NCBI GenBank assembly: GCA_002269645.1 | Contig: NIVC01000085.1 | Location: 806,001-870,000 of the forward strand | Origin: Macrostomum lignano | Taxonomy: Eukaryota | Length of the DNA stretch: 64,000 bases | Direction: 5' to 3' | Shown here: positions 5,679-56,645 of the stretch, piece after piece | Layout of the letters: each line of letters opens with the position of its first letter | How positions within the stretch are numbered: the first letter of the stretch is position 1 | Position numbers and translations under genes: made by a program | The notes under the pieces: generated by a model | Databases searched by the model: none | What the model saw: only the letters and a program-made list of their open reading frames with translations | What the model was told of the DNA's origin: nothing

Positions 5679-6106
5679 GCTTCTCTAGTCTGTAAAGGTC
5701 TGCTAACATATAAGCTTTGAGAAATAAGGTCACCTTCTCACTAAGCTGGATTGGATAATTGCTCTAATAGGTCATTATAGGCGCGGCAGCTCGCTTATAA
5801 AAGGCGGCCTGGTTTTCTCTTTCAGAGGAAAAGCCACTAGCCGGTTTGCCTTTTTGCGTCTTAGTTTTGATCTGTTGTTAGCGGCTAAGCATTAAAGTGA
5901 CTTTCGGAAGGTGCTCTGCATGTAACTGAACTTCAGATTTAATGACCTGAAATCGTCGTAGAAGACCCACGCACTCGAATCTTTGCAGACGTTTTTTTAA
6001 CTTTCGGCGCAAATATTGAATTCAGCAATTGGGCAGGTGGTTCGATGCCGATTGAGGCTTTGGCTTCATCCGACGGATGTCGGAATGGTCTTCGTGTATC
6101 ACAACA

Positions 6107-7225
6107 GTGACAGAGAAAAGAAGAAAGTGACAGAGAAAAGAAGAAAGTGACAGAGAACAGAAGGAGAGTGACAGAGAAAAAAAGAAAGTGACAGAGAAAA
6201 GAAGAAAGTGACAGAAAACAGAAGGAGAGTGACAGAGAAAAGAAGAAAGTGACAGAGAAAAGAAGAAAGTGACAGAGAACAGAAGGAGAGTGACAGAGAA
6301 AAGAAGAAAGTGACAGAGAAAAGAAGAAAGTGACAGAGAACAGAAGGAGAGTGACAGACAGAGAGAATAGTGAAGAGTGACAGACAACAGGAATAGTGAC
6401 AGACAACAGAAATAGTGACAAGAAAAGAGTGACAGACCGCAGGAATGGTGACAAGTAAAGAGCGACAGACAACAGGAATAGTGGCAGGGAAAAAGTGACA
6501 GACCGCAGGAATGGTGACAAGTAAAGAGTGACAGACAACAGGAATAGTGGCAGGGAAAAAGTGACAGACCGCAGGAATGGTGACAAGTAAAGAGTGACAG
6601 ACAACAGGAATAGTGGCAGGGAAAAAGTGACAGACCGCAGGAATGGTGACAAGTAAAGAGTGACAGACAACAGGAATAGTGGCAGGGAAAAAGTGACAGA
6701 CAACAGAAATAGTGACAGGGAAAGAGTGACAGACAACAGGAATAGTGGCAGGGAAAAAGTGACAGACAACAGAAATAGTGACAGGGAAAGAGTGACAGAC
6801 AACAGGAATAGTGGCAGGGAAAAAGTGACAGACAACAGGAATAGTGACAGGGAAAGAGTGACAGACAACAGGAATAGTGGCAGGGAAAGTGACAGACAAC
6901 AGGAATAGCGACAGCAAAAAGTGAAAGATAACAGAAATAGTGATAAGGAAAGAGTGACAGAGAACAGGAAGAGTGATAGAGAACACTAAAAGAGTGACAG
7001 AGAACAGGAAGAGATGATAGAGAACACTAAGAGAGTGACTGAGAACAGGAAGAGTGATAGAGAACACTAAAAGAGTGACAGAGAACAGGAAGAGATGATA
7101 GAGAACACTAAGAGAGTGACTGAGAACTGGAAGAGTGATAGAGAACACTAAGAGAGTGACAGATAACAGGAAGAGATGATAGAGAACACTAAGAGAGTGA
7201 CTGAGAACAGGGAGAGAGTGACGGA
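6107..7225. repeat. Purine-rich compound minisatellite (GTGACAGAGAA / GTGACAGACAACAGG / GAGAACACTAA blocks)
   Basis: Three successive unit types; explains the overlapping long low-complexity ORFs. Confidence 0.9.
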
Positions 7226-7821
7226 GAGCAGAGTGGATGGCTGGTAGGGCATCAGAGCTGCACCCAGAGTACAGGAGAGGAAGCAGATGGCGCAGGATGC
7301 AGATAGAGACGAGAAAAGCAGGTCTCACGAAAAGGTGCGCCACACCTCCTGCCACGCAGACATCAGGTGTCTCAATGGCAGCACTAATTGTTCCTGGTTA
7401 TTATATACGTAGGAGAATATAAGCCTACGTTAAACAGACTTTTGCAAATTGAAAAATATTGACTGGCGCATGTAACCGATGCAGCCGAGTAGAGCAAACA
7501 TTTTCCTCCTGTATTCTTTGTCGATTTTCTAACTGGTTAATCCAGTTTTCATTGCCAGGTTTGTCCCCTAAATATTTTAAATAAAGCGGCTTATTCGCTG
7601 TCAACCTTGTTTAAGATTTCCCAGCAATAAATCATCTTCTGATATCCCCTTAGCTGGCCAATTTGCTCATTTTAGAACGCAGAAAAACAAATCTCAGCTC
7701 GGATTTAGTAAATTGGACTAGCAATCAGTGCCCCCCATTGGGGAGCCAACAAAAAGTTTATACAATTTTTTGATTAAACTACATGTAGGTTCTGACCTTT
7801 GCCTTGACATCTCAGCTATTC

Positions 7822-8875: not shown

Positions 8876-9899
8876 TCTGTGATGTTTTATTTTGAGTTTT
8901 ATTTGGAGATAATAACCTTAGGAACCTCGGTTTGCCATAGGGTTGTGTTTAAACAGCATAAAGTGTTGAAGCGGCTCCACATAGAATGGAATGAACTTAA
9001 AAATACGACTCAACTGACGGATCGACACTTCCGCTAGTCCGTGAATAAGTTTTAAAGAGGGTAATAATTAATCCCATTAATTTATGCTGTGCTTTTCCCA
9101 AATCCCTCATCAAGTCCGCCATCTGCATGCTGGGATTTTGGCACCTCTGCGCTGAAGAGCTGGTGAAGTTCGAGACCTGGCAGCCGAGAAGGGCCTGGAG
9201 GCGCGGCGGTCGCCATGACCGACGGGGCGCCGTGCCGCGGCGGCGGTGGCGCGGGCTCACGTCATCAGCTCAAGAGCTCTGCGACCGCTGCTGGCAAACA
9301 GAAGGGAGAGGAAGAGAGAGGGAGAGAGAAGACTGCAAGGAGAAAAATGATAGAGGCAGGGATACTGGAGTTCCATAAAAGAGATCGCCGGCAGAAGTAG
9401 GAAGTCATGTGAAGCAAATCCCTGATACACAGCAGCGTGTGCAGAACTAGGCTGCGCCCTGACTGACAGTTGAACTCAGAACTCCAAACATGCGGCGTGT
9501 CCGCAGGTGAAGTCCTGACTAACCGGTCAATATCAGCTGACGAAGACGAAGATTGACAGCTCAGAAACCAGTGCTGATCTCATTGAAGACGCTCACGCGG
9601 AGGGAAAAAACTGATGCACCACTCCATCATTGAATCGCAACTGCCAGTACAATTTAGGCTGCGCTTGAAACAAAGATGATTGATGATTTCCATTTCTCTC
9701 GCCAGGTGCTACAAACTGCGGCCAGGTGTCTGACCACCTCGCCGCTGCCCGCTAGGCCGACTGCCCAAGTGCTGCTGCCGCTCCGCCAGCCACCTCGCCA
9801 AGGACTGCCCGATGGGCGGCTCCGTCACCGCCACAGCTGCACCGCTTGCGGCTGCTGTGCAAGGGAAATGACTTTAACGGATGAACAGTCACTGATATG

Positions 9900-9970
9900 C
9901 ACAGACAGAAAGACAGACAGACAGACAGACAGACAGACACACACACACACACACAGACAGACGCACAGAA

Positions 9971-10014
<44 letters not shown>

Positions 10015-10020
10015 TGACAC

Positions 10021-10061
<41 letters not shown>

Positions 10062-10076
10062 AAGACGCACAGACAC

Positions 10077-10111
<35 letters not shown>

Positions 10112-10186
10112 CTCAAACAGACACAGACAGACAGACAGACACTCAAACAGACACAGACAGACAGACAGACAGACACTCAAACAGAC

Positions 10187-10217
<31 letters not shown>

Positions 10218-10228
10218 CTCAAACAGAC

Positions 10229-10259
<31 letters not shown>

Positions 10260-10334
10260 CTCAAACAGACACAGACAGACAGACAGACACTCAAACAGAC
10301 ACAGACAGACAGACAGACAGACACTCAAACAGAC

Positions 10335-10365
<31 letters not shown>

Positions 10366-10432
10366 CTCAAACAGACACAGACAGACAAACAGACAGACAC
10401 TCAAACAGACACAGACAGACAGACAGACACAC
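9900..10432. repeat. (CAGA)n microsatellite with CACTCAAA interruptions
   Basis: Directly visible. Confidence 0.97.
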
Positions 10433-10887
10433 AGCTTAGCTACCTCAGCACGCAGCAGTCACTGCACCCCCAGTTATACTTACATGTGATTCAAACACAA
10501 GTCAAGACTCCAGTAAGCCAGGCCTCTCAATATCCCAAGAGAAACTGAGCCTGGAGGCTCGAAAGGCTTTGGTTTGCGCGAGTTCGCACCGCACTAGCTA
10601 ATTTTACGAGCGCTACTCCGCAAAAATATTTGTTCATGTAGGAAGCCCCCAGCGGGAGAACATGCAGTAATGAGTTGTTTTATTACGCTCGTAAGCTTTT
10701 CCCGGTTCAAACAATTATAAAATTCTTTACCTTTCTAAGTACCTGCTTACAAAACCAATAGTAACGATTCTTTGAGGTAAATTTTTATTTCAATAACAAT
10801 CTATCTGAAGTTTATTTTGCTTATTTTGTACTGTGGTTTGACTGATTTCTGAGTTGTGGTCAAAGGGGAATGAAAGATTTAAAGTGG

Positions 10888-11662
10888 ACCCCACACTGCA
10901 CACCCCAGCTCCCCATTGCACACCCCACTGCACGCACCACTGGCACCAGCAACCCATTGCACACCCCACTGCACGCACCACTGGCACGAGCAACCCATTG
11001 CACACCTCACTGCACGCACCACTGGCACCAGCAACCCATTGCACACCTCACTGCACGCACCACTGGCACCAGCAACCCATTGCACACCTCACTGCACGCA
11101 CCACTGGCACCAGCAACCCATTGCATACCTCACTGCACGCCCCAGCACCCCATTGCACATCCCAGCACCCCACTGCACGCTCCAGCACCCCACTGCACAC
11201 CCCAGCTCCCCATTGCACACCCCACTGCACGCACCACTGGCACCAGCAACCCATTGCACGCCCCAGCACCCCATTGCACATCCCAGCACCCCACTGCACG
11301 CCCCAGCACCCCATTGCACATCCCAGCACCCCACTGCACGCCCCAGCACCCCATTGCACATCCCAGCACCCCACTGCACGCCCAGCACCCCACTGCACAC
11401 CCCAGCTCCCCATTGCACACCCCACTGCACGCACCACTGGCCCCAGCAACCCATTGCACACCCCAGCACCCCACTGCACACCCCATCACCCCACTGCACA
11501 CCCCATCACCCCACTGCACACCCCATCACCCCACTGCACACCCCATCACCCCACTGCACGCCCCAGCACCCCACTGCACACCCCAGCACCCCACTGCACA
11601 TCCCAGCACCCCCCTGCACACCCCATCACCCCACTGCACGCCCCAGCACCCCACTGCACATC
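10888..11662. repeat. C/A-rich compound minisatellite (GCACCCCACTGCACA core)
   Basis: Tandem variants; source of the His/Pro-rich spurious ORFs. Confidence 0.93.
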
Positions 11663-12124
11663 TCAACAGCCTACCGCGCACCTGTAAGTAAAAATTCAGA
11701 GACAGCAAGAGGAGACGCAAGAGCAGCTCGCCAATTTCAATGAAACAACATCGGCCTACAAGTAAAAAAATGTTACAGAACAAGTATGAGGTTAATAGCA
11801 CTGTCATATTTATTATATATATATGCTTTTGTAGCGGTATAGCTAGTTTGCATAATAAACTCATTAGCTATGATTAACGTTGCTTAAATATCAAACAAAA
11901 TTGAGGGTTATGGATGCGATTAACGACTAGATGTGATTTACTGACAAGATTGCATTTTTATTTAGGAGCAGTTGCTACATAAAATGTTATACAGTGTCAC
12001 ATTCTGCGGTGCTGTCTAAAGATACTTTAGAACTACTGTATGAGTGTAAACAAATTGTCATCTAATGGACTACTCCTGACGTCACTCTCGGCCAGCACGG
12101 ATAAATAACGAGTCAGAGAGATAG

Positions 12125-14241: not shown

Positions 14242-17200
14242 TCAGTAGTTGCCGTAAGCCGGAGCGGCGTCCTCGGGGTGAGAGGCCTCGTAATTCTGCT
14301 GGGTGGTGGTGACCGAGTAGCTGTGGCCGCACTCGCCTTTGTGGAAATGATTTTTCAGCACCTGGTACTTGCGGAACATCAGGAAGCCAAAGTAGCCGTG
14401 TAGGCCAAGCGTGGGAACGGCGAACACCTGGGATAATGAGGCATCAGAGATTCTCGCTGAATTGAAGCCTATGCTAGTGCGAAATATTGAGATTGCTCAG
14501 GGATTTCCCACGGAATTTTTCATCGGGATTTCCCATTGGAAATTTCTCATAGGGATTTCCCAGGGGAATTTATCATAGGGATTTCCCAGGGGAGTTTCTC
14601 AAAGGAATTTCCCAGGGAGTTATCATAGGAATTTCCCAGGGGAGTTTATCATAGGGATTTCTCATAGGGATTTCCCAGGGGAGTTTCTCAGAGGGATTTC
14701 CCATGGGAGTTTTTCATTGGGATTTCCCACAGGAGTTTTTCATTGGGATTTCCCACAGGAGCTTCACAAAGGGATTTCCATTTGGAGTTTCTTATCGGGA
14801 TTTCCATTAGGAGTTTTTCAAAGGGATTCCCATAAGGGTTCCCCTGTGGATTTTTTTACAGCAATAGGGAATTCCCAGTAAGGGGGAATTCTGAAAATTA
14901 GCCAGAAGTTATTTCAAAAAACTCACAGCGCTGGCGATGGCGGCGCCGCCAATGCCCTTTCCGTTCACGGCCGATAGGATGAAAGCAATCAGGCTCAGAA
15001 TGACCACCACGGCCAGGTAGATCAGGATCTGAATGGGGTGGATTAAGAGAGTGTGCAGATTATCAGATTGGTTATTGGTATGTGCGCAAGCAGGGTTTTT
15101 CAAGCGTCAGAATAATGCCATTTGGGATAAAATTACATTTGTGCGTGATTCTAATTATTTTTTATCATTTATCTTACACTAAGGAGACGTTCGTATGGAA
15201 CCAATTTTATCATTGGTTCAGGAACTTATGCTTACATTTCACTTAAGAACAACTTTGTTTTTTATGAACATCAATTAATTAACCTATCCCACAAATAAAC
15301 AATTTGTTATCTCTTGTAAAGTAAATTTTGGTCGTCTGCCGCTTTTCGAAGTGCTCCTGACTTGAGCCACTGTGGCCAATTTTAGTGTCATTTGATTGAA
15401 GGCACTTCTTTTCCATTCACGTGATTCACTTTAACTTTGTATAAAGGCCAAGTGAAGGGCCAATCTGCCGTTGTTTCTGCGTAAACTTGTCAGGGAAGTC
15501 AAGCTGTTACGTTGTGCTGGCTTTAACATTTCTGGGTGTAATGTCAAAGTTGGTACAATGCTACTCATTGGTGATACACATGCTCGTGCTTATTGTTAAA
15601 GGTGCTCTTGGTCATACAGCACCTAAAGAATGCTCGTATTGTCGTTGTACAACCACTCGAATTCAGGATCGCAATGATTTTTCCAACTACTGCATGTACA
15701 TGATAGTCGCACTGATTAATTTTACCGAGCATATCGTGAAGATAATCAGTGAGTCATATCGCCTCTGACAGAAATTTCTGTTTATATCTTCACTTCCTCA
15801 AACTACACTATGCATTTTATGTATTTACTTCTTCGAGGTTCAGTGATTGGTATTCGTATGAATGTGCACATCAATCTCTCGAAAATTTTGGTTCCAATTT
15901 TGTCAGTGTTGTTTGGTGTACATTCATTAAGCTACAATTGTCATTTATTGTTGCATTTGCATGAGTTTGTTAAGTTATATGGCTCAGTTGATTCATTTTT
16001 TGCTTTTCAGTTTGAAAACCATCTTGGTGTTCTTAAGAACACGAGGTGTCCGACAGAAAGAGGTATTTTAAAACATGTCAGTAATCAGTTGATGGTGATG
16101 CGTTCTTTTTAAGTTCTCTCTCAAGCCTTGTTAATTGTAAAGTTGTGCAGTTGTAAATAGTCACTTCCAACTCAGTTTCTGGTGAAGATTTGATATTTCG
16201 CCGTGATTTGTCTATGCATCCCTACCCGTCAGAAAATCTTTCTATTGGTTATTATGCTGTGTCGCGATCATGGATTTCTGGTGCTCCTAAAGGGAAGGTT
16301 GAGTCTGAGTTCGTTTTGTTTCCATTGGCATCTAATCATATTTAGCGATTCATGTTTGTGAGCACTGCTCACAAATTTAGTGTATTACATTTTTGTTCCT
16401 TCAGCCTACATTTTTACATTTACATTTCTTAGATTCTTACATTTTTTGTTCTTCACTTGTCAGATAATATGCTGAAAACATAGAGTACGGCTCGCACATT
16501 GAATTCACTTCCGCTCTTTTGGTTAGTCACTTGCTTTTTGATCATTGACAACAATTTACAGGATTTTTGCATCTGGACTCTTACTGGTCCAGATGGTCGC
16601 TTCTTTGGTGAGAAATTAGGTTTGTTTTCCAACTGAATTGTTTTTTCCTATGGCTAAGTATTTCACATACTTAGGAAAAAATATTATTGAGTCGATAGCT
16701 GCTAAAATTTAGGTAATTTGTGTCTTATTGAAGTCCAAATTAATAACTTTATGGGTCATTTGCTTTATTGAATGTTACATTTACAAAGTTGCAAAATTCT
16801 ATAGATAATTTTCCCAATTTTCATAAATTGATTGAACAGAGATTTTCTGATTATCTTCATAATCTACATGTAGGATGTTTTTGTCTGTTGTCTATCCTCT
16901 TGAATATATCAGTCAAATATCGAATATGAGCAACCATGAATCAACGCAATGGTTTGTCGCTTCGGCATTGGGCCCCACTGAATTGAGTAAAGCTATGTTT
17001 TGAGTGCTCTTATTTATCGTCAGAACTCGGTCATTTTGTGCAATCTGTATCAACTGAAAGAGATGACGGAGGATGAACGAATGCCTTTTCCACCAAGCTG
17101 CCTCAGAGTTGGAAGTCGAAGAACTTCTGGCTGTGCTAAAGGATCCACCGCATCATCGTAAGAAGCTATCTTGAGTTTTAGCACTCGTATAAGTAACTGG

Positions 17201-18902
17201 ACTGGTGCCGAGACTGGAGCAAGTGGCCAGAATTGCTGCTCTCCCCCGCGAGGACCCGATTTCTCTGTACTTCTCGAAGGACAACCTGATACAGGCCATC
17301 AAACGCTCTAAGCCCTCGAAGGCCATTTGGCCTTGACGGTATTTGCCCGCTCGTCCTCAAATATCAAACCGCTCGCTGCATCACAATGAAATTCCTGCGG
17401 TCTGGAAGAAATCGCTGATCTGCCCGATTATCAAGAATGGCAAACCTCCAGATGACGGCGCCTCCTACCTCCCCGCGGCCCGATTTCGTTTCTCTCACCG
17501 CTGGCAAAAATCTTCGAAAAACTCCTGCTGGGCAGCCTCCAGGAAACCAAAGTTTTTAGGTTCCGGGGGAAGTATGGTTGCAAAGCTGCAAAGCTGCGAT
17601 GATGCAGTGGATCAGAAGCATTGATTACTTTATCAGTTACCTCGGTGTCAAAATTTCGGTGACTGGTAAGGTCATATGGTCGACGGATCAACTGAGGCAA
17701 TGGCTAGGCAGGGTTATGAGCGCACCCATGAAGCCTGACCAAAAGATCAAGGGGATTAAGGAAGTCCTAATCGGTAGGCTCACTTATCAACTCAGGCTAA
17801 GTGAGGTACGTGTCTGCGAGCTGGGGAGAGTTACTAGAATGGTCCAAAAAGCATGTAAGCAGATCCTACACATGCAATTAGGTGCGCCCAATGCGTGGGC
17901 CCATCTGCCCCTGTGGAGATGCGGCCTCGGGCTACCTGATTTTGAGCTCACGATTCCGCTGATGCGGCGTGCTGCCTGCGAAAGCATGGCGAGCTCTTCG
18001 GACCCAGTTGTAGCCAACATAAGTGAAAAGATTCCAACTTATGAAAGTAGTCTCACTCGTAGACTTTACGTTAAATCCGCAAAGAAGGTTATACAGGATA
18101 AATATGAGCAGGCCTATTTGAGCACCCAGAGGGAAGCTCATGAGCGTACGGTGGGAAAGCGCGGTTAGACCTTATTGGCTACATGGCGGAGACGGTGTAG
18201 TGAAGGCGGGTGAATACGTGTCTATCAACAAGTTGGTTACAAGAACTGTTGAGACGCGCCAATTCATCCACCCAAGAGTCAAAGACTTTGAGACTCTGAA
18301 ATGCCGTCGCTGTGGAAACGCGGTAGAAACTGATCTGCATGTTTTGAATGAATTCCCGTTTACCAGACTAGCCCAATGCCGCCGGCAAAATTTTATTGCG
18401 GATTACGAGCTATCTTGGCAAAGCCCTGGTGGACAATGGTTGGGAAGTTTGGAGAGAACGGCTCGTTCGTAAAGATCTAGAGAACTTTAAGCCCGACCTG
18501 ATTTGCAGGAAGGGCAACGATGGAGCGATCATAGACGTCACTGTACCCTATGAATCGAATGAGAATGTGCTACAATCAAAGGAACGGTTTAAAGAGGCTA
18601 AATATGAAGGTCTGAGGGGTCAAGTCGCCGAGCTTTTGAACATCTCTGGCGGCGTTAAAGTCGTTGGAATCGCTGGCGGTGCCTTGGGCACGGTTCTAAC
18701 CTCGACTCTCAATAAAGTGAAAGGACTCGGACTTGATCCAGTCAAGGTCGGAAAAGCATTGCAAATCTCAGCACTCCGAGGTTCAGGCCGTGTTTGGAAG
18801 GCCTTTCGGATTTAAGGCCCATATGCCTGGTGCCACCCCTTTTTTGACACTAGCGCTACGTTAGGCAAGGATTAGGGTCATTATGAGCCTAGTGGAAAAA
18901 AA

Positions 18903-18934
<32 letters not shown>

Positions 18935-21900
18935 GAATGGAGCCTGCGGCTTAATTTGACTCAACACGGGAAACCCCTGCTGACAGATGACCTGAAACTC
19001 CCAGCCTGGCAGCACGGCTTTCGCCCGATGCGCTCGACCACCACTGCCCTGTGCCAGCTCGTTGAGCAGATCAGCACTGGTTTCTGCCATGCTAAACACC
19101 CGGCGAGAACAGGCACAGTTGCCCTCGACTTGAAAGCCGCTATCGATTGTGTGGATCACTACGAGCTCATTACCGACATCTTTAACTCCGACCTGCCGAA
19201 CCTGCAACTCTCCAACTACCTTCTTGGTCGTCACGCCCGCACCGTGCTGCGCGACTGCAAGTCCGCCTGGCGCCAAGTCCGTATGGGAGTCCCCCTTATG
19301 GCAGCGCGATCAACCCGCTTCTCTTCGCTTTCTACCTGAAGGACACCCCTATGCCGGACGACCCTGACTCAAGCCTTATCGGATACGCCGACGACCTGAC
19401 TGTGGCTGCGTCTTCCGCTTCCATCTCGCGCATCCAGGAGCAACTTAACGTCTACCTGGCGCGTCTGGTGCTGTTTCTTGACGCCCGCAAGCTCAAGGTC
19501 TCGGCAGTAAAATGTACTACGACGCTCTTCACTCCGGACCAACGGGAATACGCCAGGGCCCTCGAGGTCAACTTTGACGGCTTCAGACTACCCCAGGCCC
19601 TCTATCCTAAAATCCTGGGAGTCATCTTTGACCCGAAAATGACGTTTTGCCGCCACGTCAACGCGACGACCCAGAAGGCCCGCAAGCGTAATAGCGTCCT
19701 CCGTTGATTGGCGGGCAGCAGTTGGGGTTGCTGCAAGGAGCTGCTTCTCAACACCTTTAGGGCGATTTCACGCAGCATCCTCAACTACGCTGCTCCTGTT
19801 TGGGGACCTACTATCTCGTCCTCCTCCTGGACCGGGCTCCAGGCGGTCCAAAACGCGGCCATTCGGTGCGTCACGGGCTGCACCGTCAGCGGTGCCGTGG
19901 CTGACCTCCACTGCGAGACTCGGATGCTCCCGGTCCAGCAGCACAACAGGCTCCTCTCTCCAGTTCCTTCTGGCCTTCCGCTGCCCTGAGCACCCCTGTC
20001 ATCATCTCTCCGCCTGCCCGGCTCCTCGCCGGCGCATGAAGCCATCCATCTTTACAGCACCGTTCTTTGATGATTCCTGGCAGCCAGTCACCGCCCCGGC
20101 GGTCATCGACGACGCGGCAGCCTGGGACAGGGCGAGACGAGCACAAAATTCGCTCATCGTACTGGATTATATCGACAGCCTACCTCCTAACCGCGTCGTT
20201 GGTCTCTGCCCTGATATCTGCGAGTCTGAACGCTCTCTGCCGCGCCGTACATTCTGCCTGCTCGCCCAGCTGCGCTCAGGTTTCAGCCCCTTGCTTCGCA
20301 TCTACCAGCACCGGCTGAACCCTGAGACGCCTCCCAGCTGCCCTGAGTGTGGCGCGGCCTTGCATGACAGCCTGCATCTCTTTAACTGACCGGCTCACCC
20401 CACCGAGCTGGAGCCTTCGGATCAGTGGCGCAACCCCATTGAAGTCGCTAAGTTCCTGTTGCTGTCCGTCCAGCTTGACCCCGGCGAGAGTAAAAAACAA
20501 CACCATCACGGTCGCAAGCGTCATCACGATCGCAAGTGTCATCACGATCGCAAGCGTCATCACGATCGCAAGTGTCATCATGATCGCAAGCGTCATCACG
20601 ATCGCAAGCGTCATCACGTCGCAAGCGTCATCACGATCGCATGCGTCATCACGATCGCAAGCGTCATCACGATCGCAAGTGTCATCACGATCGCAAACCC
20701 CATCACGGCAAGAGTGATTGATATTTCGTCTCCTTATCTATGCTCTAGACGTCAGGATTTAGGACAAAAAAAGCGAATTTAGACAGACGCTTGTACATGT
20801 AAAAGCAGCCATAAGTTTCCAGGAACAATCCAGGTACATTGTTTGTACTAGCTGTTTCGTAATCATGCAGTGCCATTTTCTGATTAGCGTAGCCGCAATT
20901 AAGTAGCAAGAATAACAATTTAGTTTTGTACTGCTATTGGGCTTATTGGCTTATAATTAATTACCATTCTGATATATATATATTGTTTTTTTATTTATCG
21001 AGACATTGAATCACCAGTGTTTTACTGCACTTACTGCACTGTAGTACAAAAATAGTACAGGTGCTACTGAAATATTCGGCTATTCGACTTAGCCCCTAAA
21101 ACCCTTCTGGCTCCTATGGGTCCCCTGCCGGTTTTTTCCAGTGTGGAGGTAAGCTACAGACAGGTACAGTAAGCTACAGACAGGTACAGTAATCTACAGA
21201 CAGGTACTGTAATCTACAGACAGGTACTGTAAGCTACAGACAGGTACTGTAAGCTACAGACAGGTACAGTAAGCTACAGACAGGTACAGTAAGCTATAGA
21301 CAGGTACAGTAATCTACAGACAGGTACAGTAATCTACAGACAGGTACAGTAAACTACAGACAGGCACAGTAAGCTACAGACAGGTACAGTAAGCTACAGA
21401 CAGGCACAGTAAGCTACAGACAGGCACAGTAAGCTACAGACAGGCACAGTAAGCTACAGACAGGCACAGTAAGCTACAGACAGGCACAGTAAGCTACAGA
21501 CAGGCACAGTAAGCTACAGACAGGTACAGTAAGCTACAGACAGGTACAGTAAGCTACAGACAGGCACAGTAAGCTACAGACAGGCACAGTAAGCTACAGA
21601 CAGGTACAGTAAGCTACAGACAGGCACAGTAAGCTACAGACAAGCTGGGGTGACTCACCACCAGCCCGAAGGGGCCGGGAATCTTGGGCAGCAGGCGGAT
21701 CAGGTACAGGACAAACAGAATGCCGGTGCCGAAAGCGGCGGTGGTGCCAACAAAAGCAACAAAGCCGCCGCCGTGAGCGGACCAGGGGAAGACGGTGCCG
21801 CAGATGAATAAAATCACGGCCGAGACGAAAGCCGCAATCAGCACGATGCCGAGAGGAGTTCGGACAAAGTCTTTGTCCAGCCCTACACCGGGTCCCTCGG

Positions 21901-22976: not shown

Positions 22977-24529
22977 TCAAGCCAGCTTAACTCCGCCACT
23001 CTTGGCCTGGTCCAGGCGATTCTCCACGTCGTCCCAGTTGATCACCTTCCAGATGCTCTTGACGTAGTCTGGGCGAACGTTCTTGTACTGCAGGTAGTAG
23101 GCGTGCTCCCACACATCTATGCCCAGCAGCGGCTCCAGGCCTGTGGTGGCCTTTAGCGGGTCCTGGAATGCAATTTCAATGAGTACAGGTGGGTCAGAAC
23201 TGGCTCTGGTGCTGACAGGTGGGTCAGGACTGGCTCTGGTGCTGACAGGTGGGTCAGGACTGGCTCTGGTGCTGTCATGATTGCTCAGGTCATGAATCAA
23301 GACATGCTAAGATGAACCCATCTCAAACTGATGGGTCAATAGCTACTCAGATAGGTCAATAGCTACTCAGATGGGTCAATAGCTACTCAGATGGGTCAAC
23401 AGCTACTCAGATGGGTCAATAGCTACTCAGATGGGTCAATAGCTACTCAGATGGGTCAATCAATAGCTACTCAGATGGGTCAATAGCTACTCAGATAGGT
23501 CAATAGCTACTCAGATGGGTCAATAGCTACTCAGATGGGTCAACAGCTACTCAGATGGGTCAATAGCTACTCAGATGGGTCAATAGCTACTCAGATGGGT
23601 CAATAGCTACTCAGATGGGTCAATAGCTACTCAGATGGGTCAATCAATAGCTACTCAGATGGGTCAATAGCTACTCAGATGGGTCAATAGCTACTCAGAT
23701 GGGTCAATAGCTACTTAGATAGGTCAATCAATAGCTACTCAGATGGGTCAATAGCTACTCAGATGGGTCAATAGCTACTCAGATAGGTCAATAGCTACTC
23801 AGATGGGTCAATAGCTACTCAGATGGGTCAATAGCTACTCAGATGGGTCAATAGCTACTCAGATAGGTCAATAGCTACTCAGATGGGTCAATAGCTACTC
23901 AGATGGGTCAATAGCTACTCAGATGGGTCAATAGCTACTCACATGGGTCAATAGCTACTCAGAAATATCAAAGGTCAGCTATAAAAGTAGACACTGACCT
24001 GGTTAGCGCAGGTGGCAATCTGCAGCCGGTCAGTCTTGAAGTTATAGCCCAGCCAGGCCCACCCGCTACCCTGAACACCCACGGCGGCGGCTGACATCTG
24101 CTCCTGGAACTTGCTGAACGAGCCGAAATCGCGATTGACCGCCTCCAACAGGAACTGGGATGGCTCGCCACCGCCCTGAGGGCTGAGGTTCTTCCAGAAG
24201 ATGCTGTGGTTCACGTGACCGCCGCCATTGAATCGCAGAGCCGCCTGGACGGCAATGATGTCGGAAGCTTTGCCAGCAGCCAGAGCGGCGGCCAGAGTCT
24301 CCTGGGCGGAGTTGAAATTGTTCACATAGGTGGCGTGGTGCTTCTGGTGGTGCAGACGCATGATATCGGCGCTGATGACCGGCTCCAGGGCGCTGTAGTC
24401 GTAGGGCAGGTCGGGCAGGACAGCCTTTACAATTGGCTGAGGAGCCTGAGCCGCACCGCTGAGCGGTTGGATGCAGAGCCGCTGGCACAGACGGACAGCA
24501 GATGGCAGCTTGGAGCCGATGCAGTGCAT
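22977..24529 (-). CDS. SOD2: Mitochondrial Mn superoxide dismutase, 2 coding exons, 238 aa
   Basis: Exons 24529-23999 and 23162-22977 join at phase 0 (ANQ|DPL). Motifs [46 protein letters not shown] and [18 protein letters not shown], with a presequence-like N-terminus. Confidence 0.97.
23185..23962. repeat. Two minisatellites filling the SOD2 intron (30 bp x3; 20-bp GATGGGTCAATAGCTACTCA x~31)
   Basis: Directly visible tandem units. Confidence 0.95.
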
Positions 24530-27445
24530 GTTGGAGCTGAAGAGCAGGTGGGTTGGGGTGAATAAATTCATTACTAATTATACACTTAATTTCAATTAAT
24601 AATTAAAATAAAAATTTTTATACAATCGAAATGTCAATAAAAATACTATAGAAGTTAAAAAATAATAGCAAAACCATATATAATAATTAGGACTCACAAA
24701 ACTGAAGCTGCTTTTATAACTTATGTCATTGTGTCTTATAATTTCTAAGAAATAGCTTTTCATAGAACTAAATCAGGGTATAAATAATAATGATTTAATT
24801 CACTTTATCTAATTCAAAACCTACCTAAAAGATTATATCTGAACTATTAAGATTTAGTTACATATATATAATATAAGATTTTTGGCTAAAAATAGAACTA
24901 TTTCTTGAATATAAAAATCCATCATTTTTCTTTTTAATTCAATATATCATTGAAATTTCTTCCTTTATTTTAGGTACCTACAAATTTTTTATATGCTGAA
25001 AAATAGGATATATTAGATATATAGATGAATATTTTTATATAGCAAAATTTATGATACATTTTCAATTATAGCAGCTAATAAAAAAGATAAGAAATAAATA
25101 AATAAATAAGAAACCAATAGGTTAATCTCTAGACATGATAGAAAAGTATTTAAATCATAGGAATTTGGGATCCTAGGATTCTGACTTCAATTCAATATTG
25201 TGCAAATGCCAAAAATCATTTAACTTGGTATGTTTTTATAGACCTAAAAATAGCCTATAACTATATGAAACAAGTTTAATACACTTTTAACAAAAATAAA
25301 CTTGACTTTTTCAATAACAAAAATTCCACCTTGGCCTAGGGTAGAATATGAGGGCAAATCAAAAAGTCCTGTTACTTTCTTAACTAGGCCTAGAAACAAA
25401 ACAAACAATGATTAACTGTTAATCATTTTACACTTTCTCAACAAAGTTCCCATGCAGTGACACACACTTGGCCTAGCACTCTGGTAGCTTCTGAATGCCC
25501 ATAGTGTACCAGTCTTTACCCTGGTTTTTGCATCACTGGTTTACCAAGGATGCTAATGGCAATGCAGTCATAGAAGCCTAATGGTGGCCTTAAAGTGAGT
25601 TTTTTAGAACTAAGAATAGCCAAAAGTCTGATAGAGCTAGGTTTGGTAAATGAGCAGGGTAAGGGAGCTGCTTAAACCCTAGCTTGTAGATGGCAGCCTG
25701 CGTCTTGTGATAGGTATATGCCGAGGTGTTGTCACATACTTATATATGCTTAACACCTATCCAACCCATCCAAACTAGATAGGTAAAATGGCCACTGGCC
25801 AAAGTAAGTTGCAAAATTGAAAATGCAATAAGTGAAAAATTGGGAAAAGAAAGGAGAAGAGAAAAGGAAAAGAAAGAAGGGAAAAAGAGAGGAAAAATGA
25901 AAGAAAAAAAGAAAAGAAAAGAAAAAAAGGCAAAAAAGTCATAGGCCTATATAATATAAAAATTAAGTCGCAATTAGGGGAACTAAGTTGCAATTAGGAA
26001 GAACTAAGTTGCAATTGGGAGAAACTAAGTCACAAATCTAGACAAAACTAAGTTGCACTTGCACCAGATGGGTGAAATTTTGGGGTTGGGCATATATATA
26101 TTGTCATAAAACAACTGGATGCCCCTGGTGACCTTTCCTTGTCTCTTCTCCTTGATTGCTTCTTTTAGCTAGCATAATATAGCAATGTAGGAGTCTCCTG
26201 TGACTATCCACTTCTCTGATAGCCACTTGATTAGCATCACCCCTTGCTGAACCCAGAAGATGGTGCCCATCCACTTCTTCATTTATGGTACCATACTAGC
26301 CTTCATTGGAATAGGTTCATTGAGGCACTTCCATTGTATATTTTGAGCTTTGGTCTTTGGCTCATCTGGCCCTAGCTAGGCCTATATATTTTCAACATAA
26401 AAAGTTATAAGGCTTACACATTGAACAAGTGCTTTGAAACCATACATAAGAAAAAATGGTCTATGAAAATTGTCTTAATAGATTAGATTGTTTTAGGGCC
26501 TAACGTTAAAGCTTCTATGTCATCTATGATATTGATTTTTGGAAACATTGTTTTTGCTGATCTGACCATGTTTAGGCCCTATTCTTGGCCAAATTTTGTT
26601 TGGCACCTCAACTTAAGAATTAAGACTCAAAAATAGCAATGTTGCATCATATATAAGTCTAATTAGTATAGCCTATAGGGCCTACTAGAGTTTGATGAAA
26701 TTTTAAATCTAACTTTTTTATTTAAGCCTAACTCACAGTCCCACATAGCAACATGCAAACAAGATAGCCATAGATAATTCAAGCCTATCGCATAGGCTTA
26801 TGCATGGTACAATTGAATAGGCAGGCCTACAAAACTCAAAACTGAGGTTGACAATGTATCAAAATAACTTCTCCAGGACAACACTTGTGTCACTTTTCAG
26901 TGGAAGCGTAATAATAAATTGAAATAAAACTATTTTCATGTTATAAAATTTAATTAATCTACGAGCGTATTATGCATCTAAAATTTAACCTTATCTGTAC
27001 TCTGTATTCTGGGATTGGATAATTTGCTAAAAATAAATTAAAAATAGCCGGTTAAATTTGTGAAGAAAACAATGCGTCATTATAACAAAACTGATTCTAT
27101 GCAAATAGATATATATGTGTACTTTATAAGTTTTTTATATAATTTTTATTTTCAAAAATTAAAATATAGCTAGCAATTCAGCTTTATGTACAGTAATAAT
27201 CAATGTTAATATTTTCGCGAAAATAAGTTCGGTATAATAATCAATATTTAATAGATAGTCACTAAATTGCATAGTATATGAGGCAGTCGCATATATCACA
27301 ATATGTATAGCGCTCATAGAAACACATGCATTTGTGATTACTGTATCGAATCTGTACATGCATATTAAATCTACATGTACATGTATAGCTGTAATGCATA
27401 TAGTGATCTCGAATTAAAAGTGCATTGGTTGGCATGTACACAAGC

Positions 27446-31730: not shown

Positions 31731-33290
31731 ATGCAGAGCGATTTGAAAGTGGGCAGCAGTTGTCCAAGTTGCTGCAATGCTCAAGCTCATTGTCCTGAAG
31801 CCAGTTTTGGTAATTTCGCGGCATCGCCAAAGAGCCTGCAGTGGCAGCCAAATCTGACGGCCAAACCCGAATGCCAGGGGAATTCTGCGAATTTGACTCT
31901 GACTTCTGAGCCGCTGGATTTCTCCAGGTGAGATTTGCAATGACCTTCACTGTATCTGTGAGACTTTTCGGGAATTTTCCTACCGTTGTGGGGGAATCAT
32001 TGTGGAGGCAAGGGAATTTTCCTACCGATTGGGGGTATCATTGTGGAGGCAAGGGAATTTTCCTACCGATTGAGGGGAATCATTGTGGAGGCGAGGGAAT
32101 TTTCCTACTGATTGAGGGGTATCATTGTGGAGGCGAGGAAATTTTCCTACTGATTGGGAGGGGGAATCATTGTGGAGGCGAGGGAATTTTCCTACTGATT
32201 GGGAGGGGGAATCATTGCGGAGGCGAGGGAATTTTCCTACCGATTGAGAGGGGGAATCATTGCGGAGGCGAGGGAATTTTCCTACCAATTGAGAGGGGGA
32301 ATCATTGCGGAGGCGAGGGAATTTTCCTACCGATTGAGAGGGGGAATCATTGCGGAGGCGAGGGAATTTTCCTACCGATTGAGAGGGGGAATCATTGCGG
32401 AGACAGGGAACTTTTCTGCCGTTGGGGCCGAAACCATTGCGGAGGCGAGGGAATTTTCCTACCGTTGTGGGGGAATCATTGTGGAAGCAAGGGAATTTTC
32501 CTACCGATTGAGGGGAATCATTGTGGAGGCGAGGGAATTTTCCTACTGATTGAGGGGAATCATTGTGGAGGCGAGGGAATTTTCCTACTGATTGAGGGGA
32601 ATCATTGTGGAGGCGAGGGAATTTTCCTACTGATTGAGGGGTATCATTGTGGAGGCGAGGAAATTTTCCTACTGATTGGGAGGGGGAATCATTGCGGAGG
32701 CGAGGGAATTTTCCTACCGATTGAGAGGGGGAATCATTGCGGAGGTGAGGGAATTTTCTTACCGTTTGAGAGGGGGAATCATTGCGGAGGCGAGGGAATT
32801 TTCCTACCGATTGAGAGGGGGAATCATTGCGGAGACAGGGAACTTTTCTGCCGTTGGGGCCGAAACCATTGCGGAGGCGAGGGAATTTTCCTACCGATTG
32901 GGAGGGGGAATCATTGCGGAGACGCGAATCCTTTAAACATCCGTCTTCTCATGCTCTCAGCAGGCAGCCACCTGTCTCGCTCACCTCTGCAATCAACCGC
33001 GAGTCAAGCAGCCGACCGGCCACAAAGAAGCAGACGAGCTGCTCGAAGCAGCGACAGCAGCAACCAGACCGAGTCCGTCGACGCCACGCCGCCAACGATC
33101 GGAGCGACGTCGGATGAACGCTTTGAACGCGGCGTTCGACCAGCTCAGAGCGGCGATTCCGGCCGCTGAGGGTGATGAGGCGGCAGCGCTGCTCGGAGGC
33201 TGCGGCGGTCACGGCAGACGGCTGAGCAAATTTGAGACTCTGCTGATGGCGCAGGCCTACATTGAGATGCTGACTGGCTTGCTGGGCTAA
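31731..33290 (+). CDS. Atonal-family (ATOH1/ATOH7/amos-like) bHLH transcription factor, 2 exons, one 1-nt frameshift at ~33102
   Basis: Exon 31731-31927 (AG|GTGAGA) joins exon 32961-33290 in frame. RRRHAANDR[ERRRM][15 protein letters not shown]...[21 protein letters not shown] requires one missing G (CGGAG instead of CGGGAG). AATAAA at 33344. Exon 1 and the start codon are less certain than the bHLH. Confidence 0.82.
31960..32922. repeat. ~42-45-bp minisatellite filling the atonal-like intron
   Basis: GGGAATTTTCCTACCGATTGAGAGGGGGAATCATTGCGGAGGCGA-type units; explains the 413-aa ORF. Confidence 0.93.
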
Positions 33291-33560: not shown

Positions 33561-34111
33561 TTCCTGGGGACATGGTAGATTTTGATGCAAAATACCTGCC
33601 TTTCTACTACAAGTAGACTAACGAAACTATTACAAGAAAAAAGCAAGAAAAATATTCACCATGACCGTAAAACGCATGTAAACAGTCAGAATGAAAAGCA
33701 AGGCAGGGAGGCATTATGAAATCTTTTATAGGGCGCAGGCTCTGCATGCATGGTGTATTCGCTGCTGACTGCTGCTGCTGCTGCTGGTATCCAAAGTGCT
33801 GTTGAACTGATGCTGCAGCACAGCGAGGCGGCTGTTACCTACAGTATAAAAGATCGAAAAACACAGATTAAACAGGTTTAACCCCCCCCCAATGTACATG
33901 TTAGGGCAAGCAAAAGGTAATTAATAATTTTACAACTGCAAACTGGCGACATCGCACATATTTGCTGTGCGAGTGTGCAGTGTTGATCAGGTTCTCTCTT
34001 GTTCGAGCTAATGATGTGGCTCGCCGGGGCCGCTGCCCCCCCATTCACTAGGCTGGTGAATTTTATGGGCACATTTTTGCCCAGCTGATTTAGCGCCCTT
34101 TACGGCAGCTG

Positions 34112-34862
34112 TGGCGCCCCTGGTGCTGGCGCCCCTGGTGCTGGCGCCCCTGGTGCTGGCGCCCCTGGTGCTGGCGCCCCTGGTGCTGGCGCCCCTGGTG
34201 CTGGCGCCCCTGGTGCTGGCGCCCCTGGTGCTGGCGCCCCTGGTGCTGGCGCCCCTGGTGCTGGCGCCCCTGGTGCTGGCGCCCCTGGTGCTGGCGCCCC
34301 TGGTGCTGGCGCCCCTGGTGCTGGCGCCCCTGGTGCTGGCGCCCCTGGTGCTGGCGCCCCTGGTGCTGGCGCCCCTGGTGCTGGCGCCCCTGGTGCTGGC
34401 GCCCCTGGTGCTAAAGCCCCTGGTGCTAAAACCCCTGTTCCTGGCGCCCCTGGTGCTAAAACACCTGGTGCTAAAACCCCTGGTGCTAAAACCCCTGGTG
34501 CTAAAACCCCTGGTGCTAAAACCCCTGGTGCTAAAACCCCTGGTGCTAAAGCCCCTGGTGCTAAAGCCCCTGGTGCTAAAACCCCTGTTCCTGGCGCCCC
34601 TGGTGCTAAAACACCTGGTGCTAAAACCCCTGGTGCTAAAACCCCTGGTGCTAAAACCCCTGGTGCTAAAACCCCTGGTGCTAAAACCCCTGGTGCTAAA
34701 GCCCCTGGTGCTAAAGCCCCTGGTGCTAAAGCCCCTGGTGCTAAAACCCCTGGTGCTAAAGCCCCTGGTGCTAAAACCCCTGGTGCTAAAGCCCCTGGTG
34801 CTAAAACCCCTGGTGCTAAAGCCCCTGGTGCTAAAACCCCTGGTGCTAAAACACCTGGTGCT
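34112..34862. repeat. 15-bp minisatellite, two domains (CTGGCGCCCCTGGTG then CTAAAACCCCTGGTG)
   Basis: Unit switches near 34410; a 150-bp higher-order duplication occurs at 34411 and 34561. Confidence 0.96.
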
Positions 34863-35274
34863 CCTAACGATGGCAACCCTAATTACGAGCCTGCGGCCCT
34901 GCAGTTTAGCTGCATGCGCAGCAATTCATGTACACGCAGGATATTATTGTACGCGCAAATTTTCCACAGTCTGCTACTTCCGTAACTTCAGTCGCTTTTC
35001 AAATAGAAAATACGCTGGTCTGTTTCGCAGTCTCGGGAAGTTCGCTTTTGTAAAGAACTTTTTTCCGCTCGCTCCGGGAAAAAGCCTTATTAGGGAAGAG
35101 GATCAGAAACTTGGTGTTTTTCGTTTAAAACTAAATGTAGCTTAGAAGCCGCGACCAAGGACTTCTGGTTGTAGCGGTAGACATGGTTTTGAAACCAATT
35201 AAAAAGTTTGACTTTCTAGACATTCAGCAAGTTTCAAAAGTGTTTTCAATTTTTACTTCAGGTTACAGGATGAG

Positions 35275-36924: not shown

Positions 36925-37665
36925 AATGAGAACCGTGGCGCCAAAATGAGACCCGATGGCGCTAAAATGAGAACCGTGGCGCCAAAATGAGACCCGATGG
37001 CGCTAAAATGAGAACCGTGGTGCCAAAATGAGAACCGATGGCGCTAAAATAATAATCGTGGCGCCAAAATGAGAACCATGGTGCTAAAATGAAAATCGTG
37101 GCGCCAAAAATGAGAACCGAAGGCGCCAAAATGAGAACCGAAGGCGCCAAAATGAGAATAGTCGCGCCAAAACGAGAACCGAAGGCGCCAAAATCAGAAC
37201 CGAGGGCGCCAAAATGAGAACCGATGGCGCTAAAATGAGAACCGAAGGCGCCAAAATGAGAATAGTGGCGCCAAAACGAGAACCGAAGGCGCCAAAATCA
37301 GAACCGAGGGCGCCAAAATGAGAACCGATGGCGCTAAAATGAGAATAGTGGCGCCAAACGAGAACCGAAGGCGCCAAAATGAGAGCCGAAATGAGAATCG
37401 TGGCGCCAAAAACGAGAACTGTGGCGCCAAAATGAGACCCCAAGCCGCCAAAACGAGAACCCAAGGCGCCAAGATGAGAATCGTAGCACCAAAACGAGAA
37501 CTGTGGCGCCAAAATGAGACCCCAAGGCGCCAAAACGAGAACCGAAGGCGCTAAAATGAGAATTATGGCGCCAACATGAGAATCACGGCGCCAACATGAG
37601 AATCACGGCGCCAACATGAGAATGATGGCGCCAACATGAGAATCACGGCGCCAACATGAGAATCA
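36925..37665. repeat. GGCGCCAAAATGAGAA-core minisatellite (~22-24 bp)
   Basis: Same core as the arrays at 27.6, 56 and 63.8 kb. Confidence 0.92.
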
Positions 37666-40180: not shown

Positions 40181-41581
40181 CTTAACCTCTCTTATCGTTT
40201 CTGGCCACATTAATAAAACAAAAAACTACGCAGTAAATTTCAAAGAACAAAATGTAATGTTTAAAACTGCAGACTCGCAGAGAGAAGAGCACTGTCGCAC
40301 TTATTTTAACAAAGCAGCATTCTCACAGATGCAGATGGTGTATTTCAAAACCAAAAACTGCAGCCAAATTATTTTGCACTTAATAATATAGTTTTACGAT
40401 CATAGCCAGCGATTTTTAACAAATAGTGATTTATGATTTATACACTTGAAAACTTTCCAATCGAAACGAACAGTTGAAATTATTAAAATTTAAAAGTTCG
40501 CGTGTACGAAATTCACACAATATTTATGCATACAGATATACTATATAATAAGGCTTACAAAGCAGTTCCGCACTGATTTTTGAGAATTAACTATGGCCAT
40601 AATGAGCAGCTAGCTAAAAGGGCAAGGGATTAATCTAAACTCATGGGGATTAAGGCTAGTTGATGCGGTTATATCGATAAAAGAAGTCAAAGGCGCCACT
40701 GCTACAGGCAGGTACAGGTGTGATGAAATATTTAAGTCAGTCAGACAGAAGGCAGTATAGAGCTGATAGCAGATGTAATTAATAAGGCAGTACATGTAAA
40801 TATTGTCAAAATAAATAAATAAATGAATATAAATATTGTGCTAGCAAGGCACAGTACAGGATTAGCACTTCTGCAGCAATTCAATTCTATGCATAGAAGT
40901 GGCAAAGCTAAAAGGCTGATTGATTTGTATGTACAATTATAGCAGAAATAGGCACTGGCGAAAGCTATATTAGAAATTCAATCAGTAGTACTACAGATTA
41001 TTAGCATTATTATTATTAGTTTGGTTATTAAAAATAGAAAACAACTTAATTAAAAGTACACAATAAAACACAAAACAACAACAGATTAGTTACCATGGCA
41101 ACGCCAATTTGCTGCATCCGAAAGAAGCCTTCTCAGCCTCGACTTGGGATGCAGCAAAAGAAACTGGACAAAGACAGAAGAAAAGTGCGAATTGCACAGC
41201 GAAACCAAAGTCGGAAAGGAGATGCAGAAGTCCAAGCACTTCCGGTGCATCCCGGCCAACTTTAACAATCGAAACTTTGGAGAGAGAAGAAAATGAAAAC
41301 GCTCGCAAAAAGGCTTTATCAGAAAATTCGAAATAGCAGAAAAACACGACAACAACAAAACGAGAGCTTAGCGAGGGAGGCGGCGGCTGTTGAAACCGAA
41401 GGAGGGGGCCGCCTACGCAGTGGTTTTCTTGAATAAAAACGTTTGGGATTTAAAAATAAAATAATAAACAAACACAACACAAACAGAAACAAAAAGTTCA
41501 ACAAGAGAAAACTGTTCGTGAAGCAAACAAAGTGTACGAAACAAAAACCAACACAGTCTGTCCAGTCTGACCCTGTCAACT

Positions 41582-55944: not shown

Positions 55945-56645
55945 CGCCAACATGAGTGCCTGCCTGCGGCGCCAACATGAGTGCCTGCCTGCGGCGCCAA
56001 CATGAGTGCCTGCCTGGTGTGCCAACATGAGTGCCTGCCTGCGGCGCCAACATGAGTGCCTGCCTGCGGCGCCAACATGAGTGCCTGCCTGGTGTGCCAA
56101 CATGAGTGCCTGCCTGCGGCGCCAACATGAGTGCCTGCCTGCGGCGCCAAAATGAGTGCCTGCCTGGTGTGCCAACATGAGTGCCTGCCTGCGGCGCCAA
56201 CATGAGTGCCTGCCTGCGGCGCCAACATGAGTGCCTGCCTGCGGCGCCAACATGAGTGCCTGCCTGCGGCGCCAACATGAGTGCCTGCCTGGTGTGCCAA
56301 CATGAGTGCCTGCCTGCGGCGCCAACATGAGTGCCTGCCTGCGGCGCCAAAATGAGTGCCTGCCTGGTGTGCCAACATGAGTGCCTGCCTGAGGCGCCAA
56401 CATGAGTGCCTACCTGCGGCGCCAAAATGAGTGCCTGCCTGCGGCGCCAAAGTGAGTGCCTGCCTGCGGCGCCAAAGTGAGTGCCTGCCTGCGGCGAAAA
56501 AATGAGTGTCTCTGACGCCAAAATGAGTGCCTGAGGCGCCAAAGTAAGTGCCTGCCTGCGGCGCCAAAATGAGTGCCTGCCTGCGGCGCCAAAGTGAGTG
56601 CCTGCCTGCGGCGCCAAAGTGAGTGTCTGCGGCGCCAAAATGAGT
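55945..56645. repeat. 25-bp satellite (GGCGCCAACATGAGTGCCTGCCTGC), ~28 copies
   Basis: Directly visible; followed by a MITE-like terminus at 56724-56759. Confidence 0.96.

Follow-up and report, generated by a model that had tools for sequence, protein, structure and literature searches.

In this work we describe a composite insertion found in a 64,000-nucleotide stretch of contig NIVC01000085.1 (positions 806,001 to 870,000), referred to below as the window, whose own numbering is used unless another locus is named. Segment 17597-18902 of the window is very probably a dead copy of an R2-type retrotransposon of the R8 clade which, together with flanks from the 18S ribosomal RNA (rRNA) gene, now lies outside the ribosomal DNA (rDNA), within a decayed long interspersed nuclear element (LINE) of the apurinic/apyrimidinic endonuclease (APE) type. 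The evidence comes from the 18S junctions of the composite, from relatives occupying the same 18S site in the rDNA of the flatworm Macrostomum lignano and of eight further lineages, from a tree in which the R8A element of Hydra falls among these 18S-inserted relatives, and from the coding sequence of the outer LINE. In the passages of PMC5035012 and PMC4838377 that draw on Kojima et al. 2006, R8 (R8Hm-A/B of Hydra magnipapillata) is given as an R2-A-clade lineage moved to 18S rDNA; in the literature searched (PMC5035012, PMC4838377, PMC3636483) 18S-specific R2-type elements are described from Hydra only.

Architecture of the composite

Direct reading of 17531-18973 (1443 bp) gave the order 18S piece, 5'-truncated R2-type element, seven adenines (A7) and 18S piece, all on the + strand and in rRNA sense (Table 1). 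The upstream 18S fragment reads GGCAGCCTCCAGGAAACCAAAGTTTTTAGGTTCCGGGGGAAGTATGGTTGCAAAGCTG and aligns through G1139 of the Rfam eukaryotic small-subunit (SSU) model; compared with the 18S of M. lignano it is identical at 60/62 positions (blastn E 3e-24), which excludes a chance match, and among the 18S sequences collected its AAAGTTTTTAGGTT is common to M. lignano only. The element reads ...CCTAGTGG at its 3' end, reaching 18895. The downstream fragment was read as TAAAGGAATTGACGGAAGGGCACC...CAACACGGGAAA; its Rfam alignment opens at model position 1146 (18904 of the window), with U1145 before it, and relative to L002, an intact M. lignano copy described below, it carries a 3-nt insertion after 18934. 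Exactly model positions 1140-1144 (AAACU) are missing between the two pieces. At the 5' junction CAAAGCTG is present twice in tandem (17581-17588 and 17589-17596), and the second occurrence may have arisen by duplication of the target or by joining at microhomology with AACAGCTGC of the element, because the intact M. lignano copy has AACAGCTGC just upstream of the point at which the window copy is truncated.

A first-pass annotation, prepared from the letters of the window, had proposed an element in rRNA sense between two consecutive 18S pieces, with AAACT missing and CAAAGCTG repeated, and both our reading and Rfam bear this out. From the extent which it gave, 17531-18975, the start is kept, and the 18S sequence ends at 18973. 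Its view that the composite lies outside an rDNA array also holds, as the insertion sits within another LINE and adjoins single-copy genes. Rfam detected no other rRNA or other family in the 64-kb window, and a self-blast revealed no second copy of any part of the composite there.

Three overlapping reading-frame pieces of the element merge into a conceptual protein of ~406 aa, which retains the thumb of the reverse transcriptase (RT), a linker, a CCHC zinc knuckle (KCRRCGNAVETDLHVLNEFP; CRRCG..ETDLH..) and a restriction-like endonuclease (RLE; KPDL...IDVT...K..KY, present as KPDLICRK..AIIDVTVPYE..KEAKY), and ends at a stop codon at 18813-18815. In PDB it aligns with the C-terminal parts of R2 structures, with E ~1e-22 for both 9nl3 and R2Tg (9dou) and 1e-13 for R2Bm (8gh6), in agreement with the annotated R2-type (RLE) identity. 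The homology to the intact M. lignano copy opens at codon ~759 of 1156, downstream of the Pfam RVT_1 region of the intact protein (residues 515-770), and Pfam found no RVT_1 in the window copy; the earlier label RT-CCHC-RLE is thus correct for the knuckle and the endonuclease and overstated for RT, as the catalytic core is absent. Compared with L002, the copy has lost 2 nt after 18127 and gained 7 nt after 18403, both changes shifting the reading frame, and the last cysteine of the knuckle is changed to phenylalanine (18353-18355). The remnant is 85% identical in amino acids to residues 756-1155 of the intact protein, and its nucleotide identity with the M. lignano copies is ~86%, with 12.5% mismatch in the aligned blocks. 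Two frameshifts, the altered knuckle and the lost RT core together mark the window copy as a dead, 5'-truncated remnant, predicted to have no function today.

Table 1. Coordinates of the composite and of the surrounding LINE in the window
Feature	Position	Strand	Description and basis
Outer LINE, left part	17100..17530	+	APE-type, 5'-truncated, frameshifted; RT domains 0-1, ends ...PLAKIFEKLLL; translations, homologues 41-47%
Upstream 18S rRNA fragment, 58 nt	17531..17588	+	Ends ...GGTTGCAAAGCTG; Rfam SSU model ~1081-1139
Second CAAAGCTG, 5' junction	17589..17596	+	Direct reading; compared with intact copy upstream of truncation point
Decayed ORF (open reading frame) remnant, R8-clade R2-type element	17597..18815	+	ORFs, translations, PDB R2 matches, alignment to P0010/L002
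Element 3' untranslated region (UTR)	18816..18895	+	Ends ...GAGCCTAGTGG as in M. lignano copies; alignment to L001-L003
A7 tail	18896..18902	+	Direct reading; A9 in L002 and L003; unbroken 13-A run in L001
Downstream 18S fragment, 71 nt, TAAAGGAATTGACGG...CACGGGAAA	18903..18973	+	SSU model 1145-~1217; Rfam E 4.6e-08
Outer LINE, right part	18974..20400	+	Resumes at codon CCC: PLLTDDLKLPAWQHGFRP...; rest of RT, C-terminal CPECG...H...H; Pfam RVT_1 positions 37-125 and 147-204
Tandem repeat	20504..20718	+	Just downstream of outer LINE reading frame; self-blast, repetitive translations

Intact relatives, the 18S site and the R8 clade

An exhaustive HMMER protein search with the remnant found 1186 relatives; a word-indexed protein search with the same query gave one weak aphid match only, and a metagenome scan for related loci found nothing. 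The best relative, P0010 (PAA49614.1, a hypothetical protein of M. lignano, 1156 aa, E 1e-221), carries RVT_1, a CCHC knuckle and RLE in one uninterrupted ORF. Against PDB it matched 9nl3 and R2Tg (9dou), both with E ~1e-90, as well as R2Bm (8gh6, 2.5e-74), while neither Pfam nor the PDB comparison found an APE domain in it. Residues 82-186 align, with a weak local score of 17.7 bits, to residues 14-103 of 9nl3, a part of its zinc-finger-bearing N-terminus, with matching Cys/His pairs; elements of the R2-A clade are marked by three zinc fingers at this end (ZnF3:2 plus ZnF1), a region which the window copy has lost. A second M. lignano R2-type protein, P0016 (UniRef A0A1I8FS13, 1377 aa), was paired with P0010 in a first rough tree.

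The contig of P0010 is an rDNA unit in the order 18S, element, remaining 18S, 5.8S and 28S, and two further M. lignano contigs show the same arrangement, so that L001-L003 represent three rDNA units with the element at the same 18S site. Their junctions match those of the window: GCAAAGCTG is followed directly by the element, which leads through GTGG-A(n)-TAAAGG back into 18S, the upstream 18S ending ...GGTTGCAAAGCTG and the element ...GAGCCTAGTGG. L002 and L003 have A9 and then TAAAGGAATTGACGG, whereas L001 has 13 uninterrupted A before GGAATTGACGG, the target T being absent. AAACT is lost in these rDNA copies too, and its loss is therefore a trait of the family. The 28S of L001 and L002 forms separate downstream matches starting at model position 1, and the flanks of the element are 18S, not the 28S TTAAGG^TAGCC site; the 28S match is single and full-length in L001, and in L002 it is ended by the end of the locus, with a low score for its length. 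M. lignano also has a U1 small nuclear RNA gene, situated about 3.4 kb upstream of the 18S gene (L002 1085-1247).

At the 5' junction of L001 (4578-4613) there is a 22-nt tandem duplication of upstream 18S, split by a 14-nt filler. Around the full-length 5' end in L002 (5700-6010) Rfam matched no ribozyme resembling that of hepatitis delta virus. A 12-nt helix is predicted in L002 between upstream 18S (AAGUAUGGUUGC, 5757-5768) and 5943-5955, a perfectly complementary 5'-UTR segment 164 nt into the element (minimum free energy fold z = -2.1; 0/300 shuffles). The junction sequence AAGCUGGA likewise pairs with UCCAGCUU (L002 5771-5778 with 5799-5806). These modelled pairings between 18S and 5' UTR may form a processing structure; neither the helix nor such a structure is conserved in the other lineages.

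For ten matches at a greater distance (~30-36% amino acid identity) the contigs, which originate from environmental assemblies, marine ones among them (ENA, JGI, Tara), were fetched, and eight of these lineages are inserted in 18S, the 3' junction being identical wherever it was captured. For P0013, P0014, P0166 (same cluster as P0021), P0022, P0023 and P0024 the downstream 18S resumes at TAAAGGAATTGACGG, and P0011 and P0028, captured at the 5' junction only, are inserted at the same place, ...GCAAAGCTG(AAA). P0030 (L015) has no rDNA flank and looks like a polyadenylated transcript. The 5' junctions stop at GCAAAGCTG plus 0-6 more target bases, and the 3' ends vary by lineage, carrying poly(A), (TTAAA)n or neither. 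At some 5' junctions parts of the upstream 18S are duplicated in a complex manner (L010-L012, and L001 mentioned above), for example several partial duplications of GCAAAGCTGAAAC in L010 (2766-2840) and at the equivalent positions of L011 and L012; these rearrangements resemble those reported for hydra and some R2s (PMC3774820). Judged from the junctions, the family is specific for one 18S site. In one of the environmental hosts a 5S gene lies between the 28S and 18S genes of the rDNA unit (L010 777-898). Another R2-type protein, P0092 (NCBI MCC7304188.1), comes from a metagenome-assembled genome, where it bears the name 'reverse transcriptase family protein [bacterium]'; the bacterial bin has probably been contaminated with eukaryotic sequence.

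The relationship to R8 could be examined on the ~480-aa region following YADD, which is provided in file S1 of PMC3774820 for Hydra R8A and many 28S R2 elements and is exactly what the window copy keeps. A neighbour-joining tree of this C-terminal region (106 sequences, 474 columns) included Hydra R8A, six 28S R2 references (zebra finch, horseshoe crab, honeybee, silkmoth, D. simulans and sea anemone) and 99 database matches. The nearest neighbour of Hydra R8A is the 18S-inserted P0013, and the smallest clade uniting Hydra R8A with all nine lineages scored as 18S-inserted has 25 members and excludes all six 28S references in 81/100 bootstraps. No Hydra-labelled protein was found among the AT-biased matches. 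Hydra R8A and the Macrostomum protein have KGLG/CGLG where the 28S R2 references have GGLG, and both possess the CRRCG..ETD.H knuckle. Hydra R8 is likewise a single-ORF RT-CCHC-RLE element inserted into 18S in rRNA sense, and its full-length copies show tandem upstream-rRNA duplications with filler at the 5' junction, as L001 does here (PMC3774820). The present case differs from it in the flatworm host and in the window copy being a dead fragment outside rDNA.

As Hydra R8A lies inside the 18S-inserted clade, the element family is placed, on this tree, as a member of R8. The first-pass annotation had called the element R8-like and supposed that the genome hosts, or hosted, an 18S-specific RLE family, of which a full-length copy might be recovered; the nesting of Hydra R8A, the full-length copies at one position in three M. 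lignano rDNA units and the 1156-aa P0010, together with the eight further lineages, substantiate these points. The examined M. lignano copies lie in 18S. What did not survive is its suggestion that, in a host other than a cnidarian, the element could be a new lineage or an independent retargeting, as the element, in a probable flatworm host, groups with Hydra R8, an outcome for which the annotation itself had foreseen that the novelty would go and the targeting would stand. A non-R8 R2 lineage that moved to 18S on its own could be argued from the apparent flatworm host and from the low identity to Hydra R8A (corrected distance ~1.4), but Hydra R8A falls inside the 18S-inserted clade with all 28S references outside it, and every captured 3' junction in the sampled lineages of the clade is at the same position, so that we reject such an independent move as very improbable.

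The protein architecture is the same as in R2 sensu stricto (R2Bm, R2Tg), which provides the closest solved structures (9nl3, 9dou, 8gh6), and by analogy the lifestyle would also be shared: co-transcription with rRNA, target-primed reverse transcription (TPRT) and frequent 5' truncation. The differences are in the target, which is 18S GAAACT^TAAAGGAATTGACGG here and 28S TTAAGG^TAGCC in R2 sensu stricto, and in the 3' A-tail, unlike many R2s. R7 also targets 18S and ends in poly(A), but it belongs to the R1 clade, which uses an APE-type endonuclease, and it occupies another position in 18S; R8 is said to lie 37 bp upstream of the R7 site. Known as R7Ag from Anopheles, R7 is an 18S rDNA-specific element with two ORFs coding for ORF1p and ORF2p (PMC7265360, PMC6530143), in contrast to the single ORF with RLE of the present element. 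With a C-terminal RLE present and P0010 devoid of APE, the family does not have the features of R7 or of R1.

Insertion site and route into the outer LINE

The position of the composite inside the RT domain of another retrotransposon was not part of the first-pass annotation. On the left side this outer LINE encodes ...YRPISFLSPLAKIFEKLLL and on the right side PLLTDDLKLPAWQHGFRPMRSTTTAL...; it is decayed, with several frameshifts and a C-terminal CPECGAALHDSLHLFN motif, and its closest database proteins, some of which carry an APE domain, are 41-47% identical. The tandem repeat downstream of its reading frame is possibly its 3' tail. In 87/95 homologues of the outer LINE the spacing from RPI to QHGF is 30 aa, with L[IL]LP as the usual 4-mer at -15. 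When the insert is simply removed (CTGCTG^CCCCTGCTG), a spacing of 30 and LLLP are restored, while a target-site duplication model gives a spacing of 27 and a model with read-through into 18S gives 36. Because only the model with no gain and no loss restores both features, the 1443-bp unit appears as a clean insertion between two codons, with no host sequence gained or lost, and the empty site under this model would read ...GAAAAACTCCTGCTG joined directly to CCCCTGCTGACAGAT....

Two candidate repeats at the ends of the insert were rejected. GGAAACC, present at both ends, was considered as microhomology or target-site duplication, and the 18S of M. lignano sets the start of the left 18S piece at 17531; an AAAC[T/C]CCTGCTG repeat, considered as a 12-13-bp target-site duplication, was shown by the homologues to be the outer LINE's own LLL-PLL coding. 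The insertion junctions have <=1 nt homology and no terminal poly(A), and on these features the insertion does not look like a product of TPRT started there by an APE or an RLE.

The most likely route, which we put forward tentatively, is that the repair of a chromosome break took in part of an R8-interrupted 18S gene, or its complementary DNA (cDNA). Endonuclease-independent, break-repair capture of retrotransposon cDNA has been described for yeast Ty1 and human L1. As in those cases, the present insertion is without target-site duplication and terminal poly(A) and has 0-1 nt of junction homology; unlike them, the captured piece would be an rRNA gene fragment already holding a truncated element. 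The same structure could have arisen in two steps, if an 18S fragment of ~135 bp landed in the outer LINE first and an R8-type protein later inserted a 5'-truncated copy into it by TPRT. Such a fragment would offer 58 bp of target before the site and 71 bp after it, which from R2 footprints is plausibly enough for target recognition, and the junctions (loss of AAACT, A-tail followed by TAAAGG) are identical to the canonical ones in rDNA. However, a junction formed in rDNA and then copied looks the same, so that nothing separates this course from co-capture, and two rare events would be needed at one place; we consider it possible but rather doubtful. It is less probable still that the RT of the outer LINE left its own RNA, copied an rRNA/R8 co-transcript and returned. 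The insert has the orientation of the outer LINE and leaves its codon phase intact, and template jumps are known for LINE RTs and have been cited for R2 junctions (PMC3774820), but with <=1 nt of homology at either junction the RT is unlikely to have resumed precisely at the adjoining nucleotide, and the self-blast showed no second copy of the chimera in the window. As rDNA and transposons are classic sources of chimeric joins, a misjoining of rDNA/R8 reads into a unique region during assembly also has to be considered; yet a misjoin would bring modern rDNA sequence, whereas this insert is old, with frameshifts, ~14% divergence, and a 3-nt insertion and substitutions in ultra-conserved 18S, and both joins coincide with one and the same codon boundary in the outer LINE, which makes an artefact extremely improbable.

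Several points weigh against our interpretation of a dead R8-clade copy carried out of rDNA by capture. The clean, duplication-free insertion would equally fit the double template switch or a later R8 insertion into a pre-existing 18S fragment. The element is ~14% divergent from the M. lignano copies and the 18S flanks only ~3-4%, a contrast that suggests a different subfamily or a sister species, and for both the outer LINE and the beta-catenin-like gene of the window the database search returned no close match from M. lignano. The host would accordingly be M. lignano or, perhaps more likely, a related macrostomid. The tree was built by neighbour joining on 474 C-terminal columns and is not a maximum-likelihood RT tree. 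Use of the same nucleotide site as Hydra R8, for which ...GCAAAGCTG(AAAC..) would have to be followed by R8 and then by TAAAGGAATTG, is the parsimonious expectation that we infer from phylogeny only.

Starting from the observed architecture and junctions, we infer where the nick is made, how TPRT proceeds and by which route the composite was captured, as follows. By analogy with R2, an R8-type element would be co-transcribed with pre-rRNA, and the family protein would bind the 18S site and nick the bottom strand at about GAAACT^TAAAGG, opposite CT^TAAAGG, the 3' OH of the nick serving as primer for cDNA synthesis on the A-tailed RNA. The top strand would be cut 5 bp upstream, with loss of AAACT, and the 5' end would be joined at ...GCAAAGCTG by means of upstream 18S carried on the RNA, or by microhomology. 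Such joining would account for the duplicated 22 nt and the 14-nt filler of L001, and perhaps for the repeated CAAAGCTG in the window; duplications of upstream rRNA at 5' junctions have been reported for hydra and other species (PMC3774820). A piece of R8-interrupted 18S, either as DNA or as cDNA of the rRNA/R8 co-transcript, would then have been captured when a chromosome break was repaired, and the composite would have decayed inside the outer LINE.

Significance and other features of the window

The window copy, inert debris in itself, opened the way to intact relatives, and their uninterrupted 1156-codon ORFs in transcribed rDNA make the M. lignano copies candidates for an active enzyme. 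The sequences leave about evenly balanced the broader proposal that, within R2, R8 forms an old 18S-specific branch of wide distribution, whose hosts include Cnidaria, Platyhelminthes (Macrostomum) and many mostly marine eukaryotes, with the M. lignano proteins as candidate active enzymes. If true, gene insertion, for which the 28S site is now used, would gain a second 'safe-harbour' target at another, universally conserved site. The relatives form a panel of natural proteins predicted to recognise an almost universally conserved 18S sequence, which bears on the repurposing of R2 for site-specific gene insertion (PMC13580325). Provided that this spread of R8 is unpublished, its host range is widened to flatworm rDNA and at least eight environmental lineages, and the distribution of the sequences shows a retargeting from 28S to 18S that would be ancient and stable. 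The clean capture in another LINE is a small example of rDNA fragments escaping the array.

Other features were noted in the window. A two-exon Mn-superoxide dismutase gene lies at 23114-24571 (-), with ...ATCANQ at the exon join; its spliced product had no exact match in a collection of 15 billion proteins. The multi-exon beta-catenin/plakoglobin-like gene, with armadillo repeats, occupies ~41300-47200 (-), its best database identity being 47-51%, so that the proteome of the host seems to be missing from the protein collection. Long mini- and microsatellite arrays are located at 5939-7355, 9752-10439, 10854-11743, 31928-33169, 34100-35145, 37084-37533 and 55741-56702; they yield spurious long ORFs in several frames, and the genome is very rich in tandem repeats.

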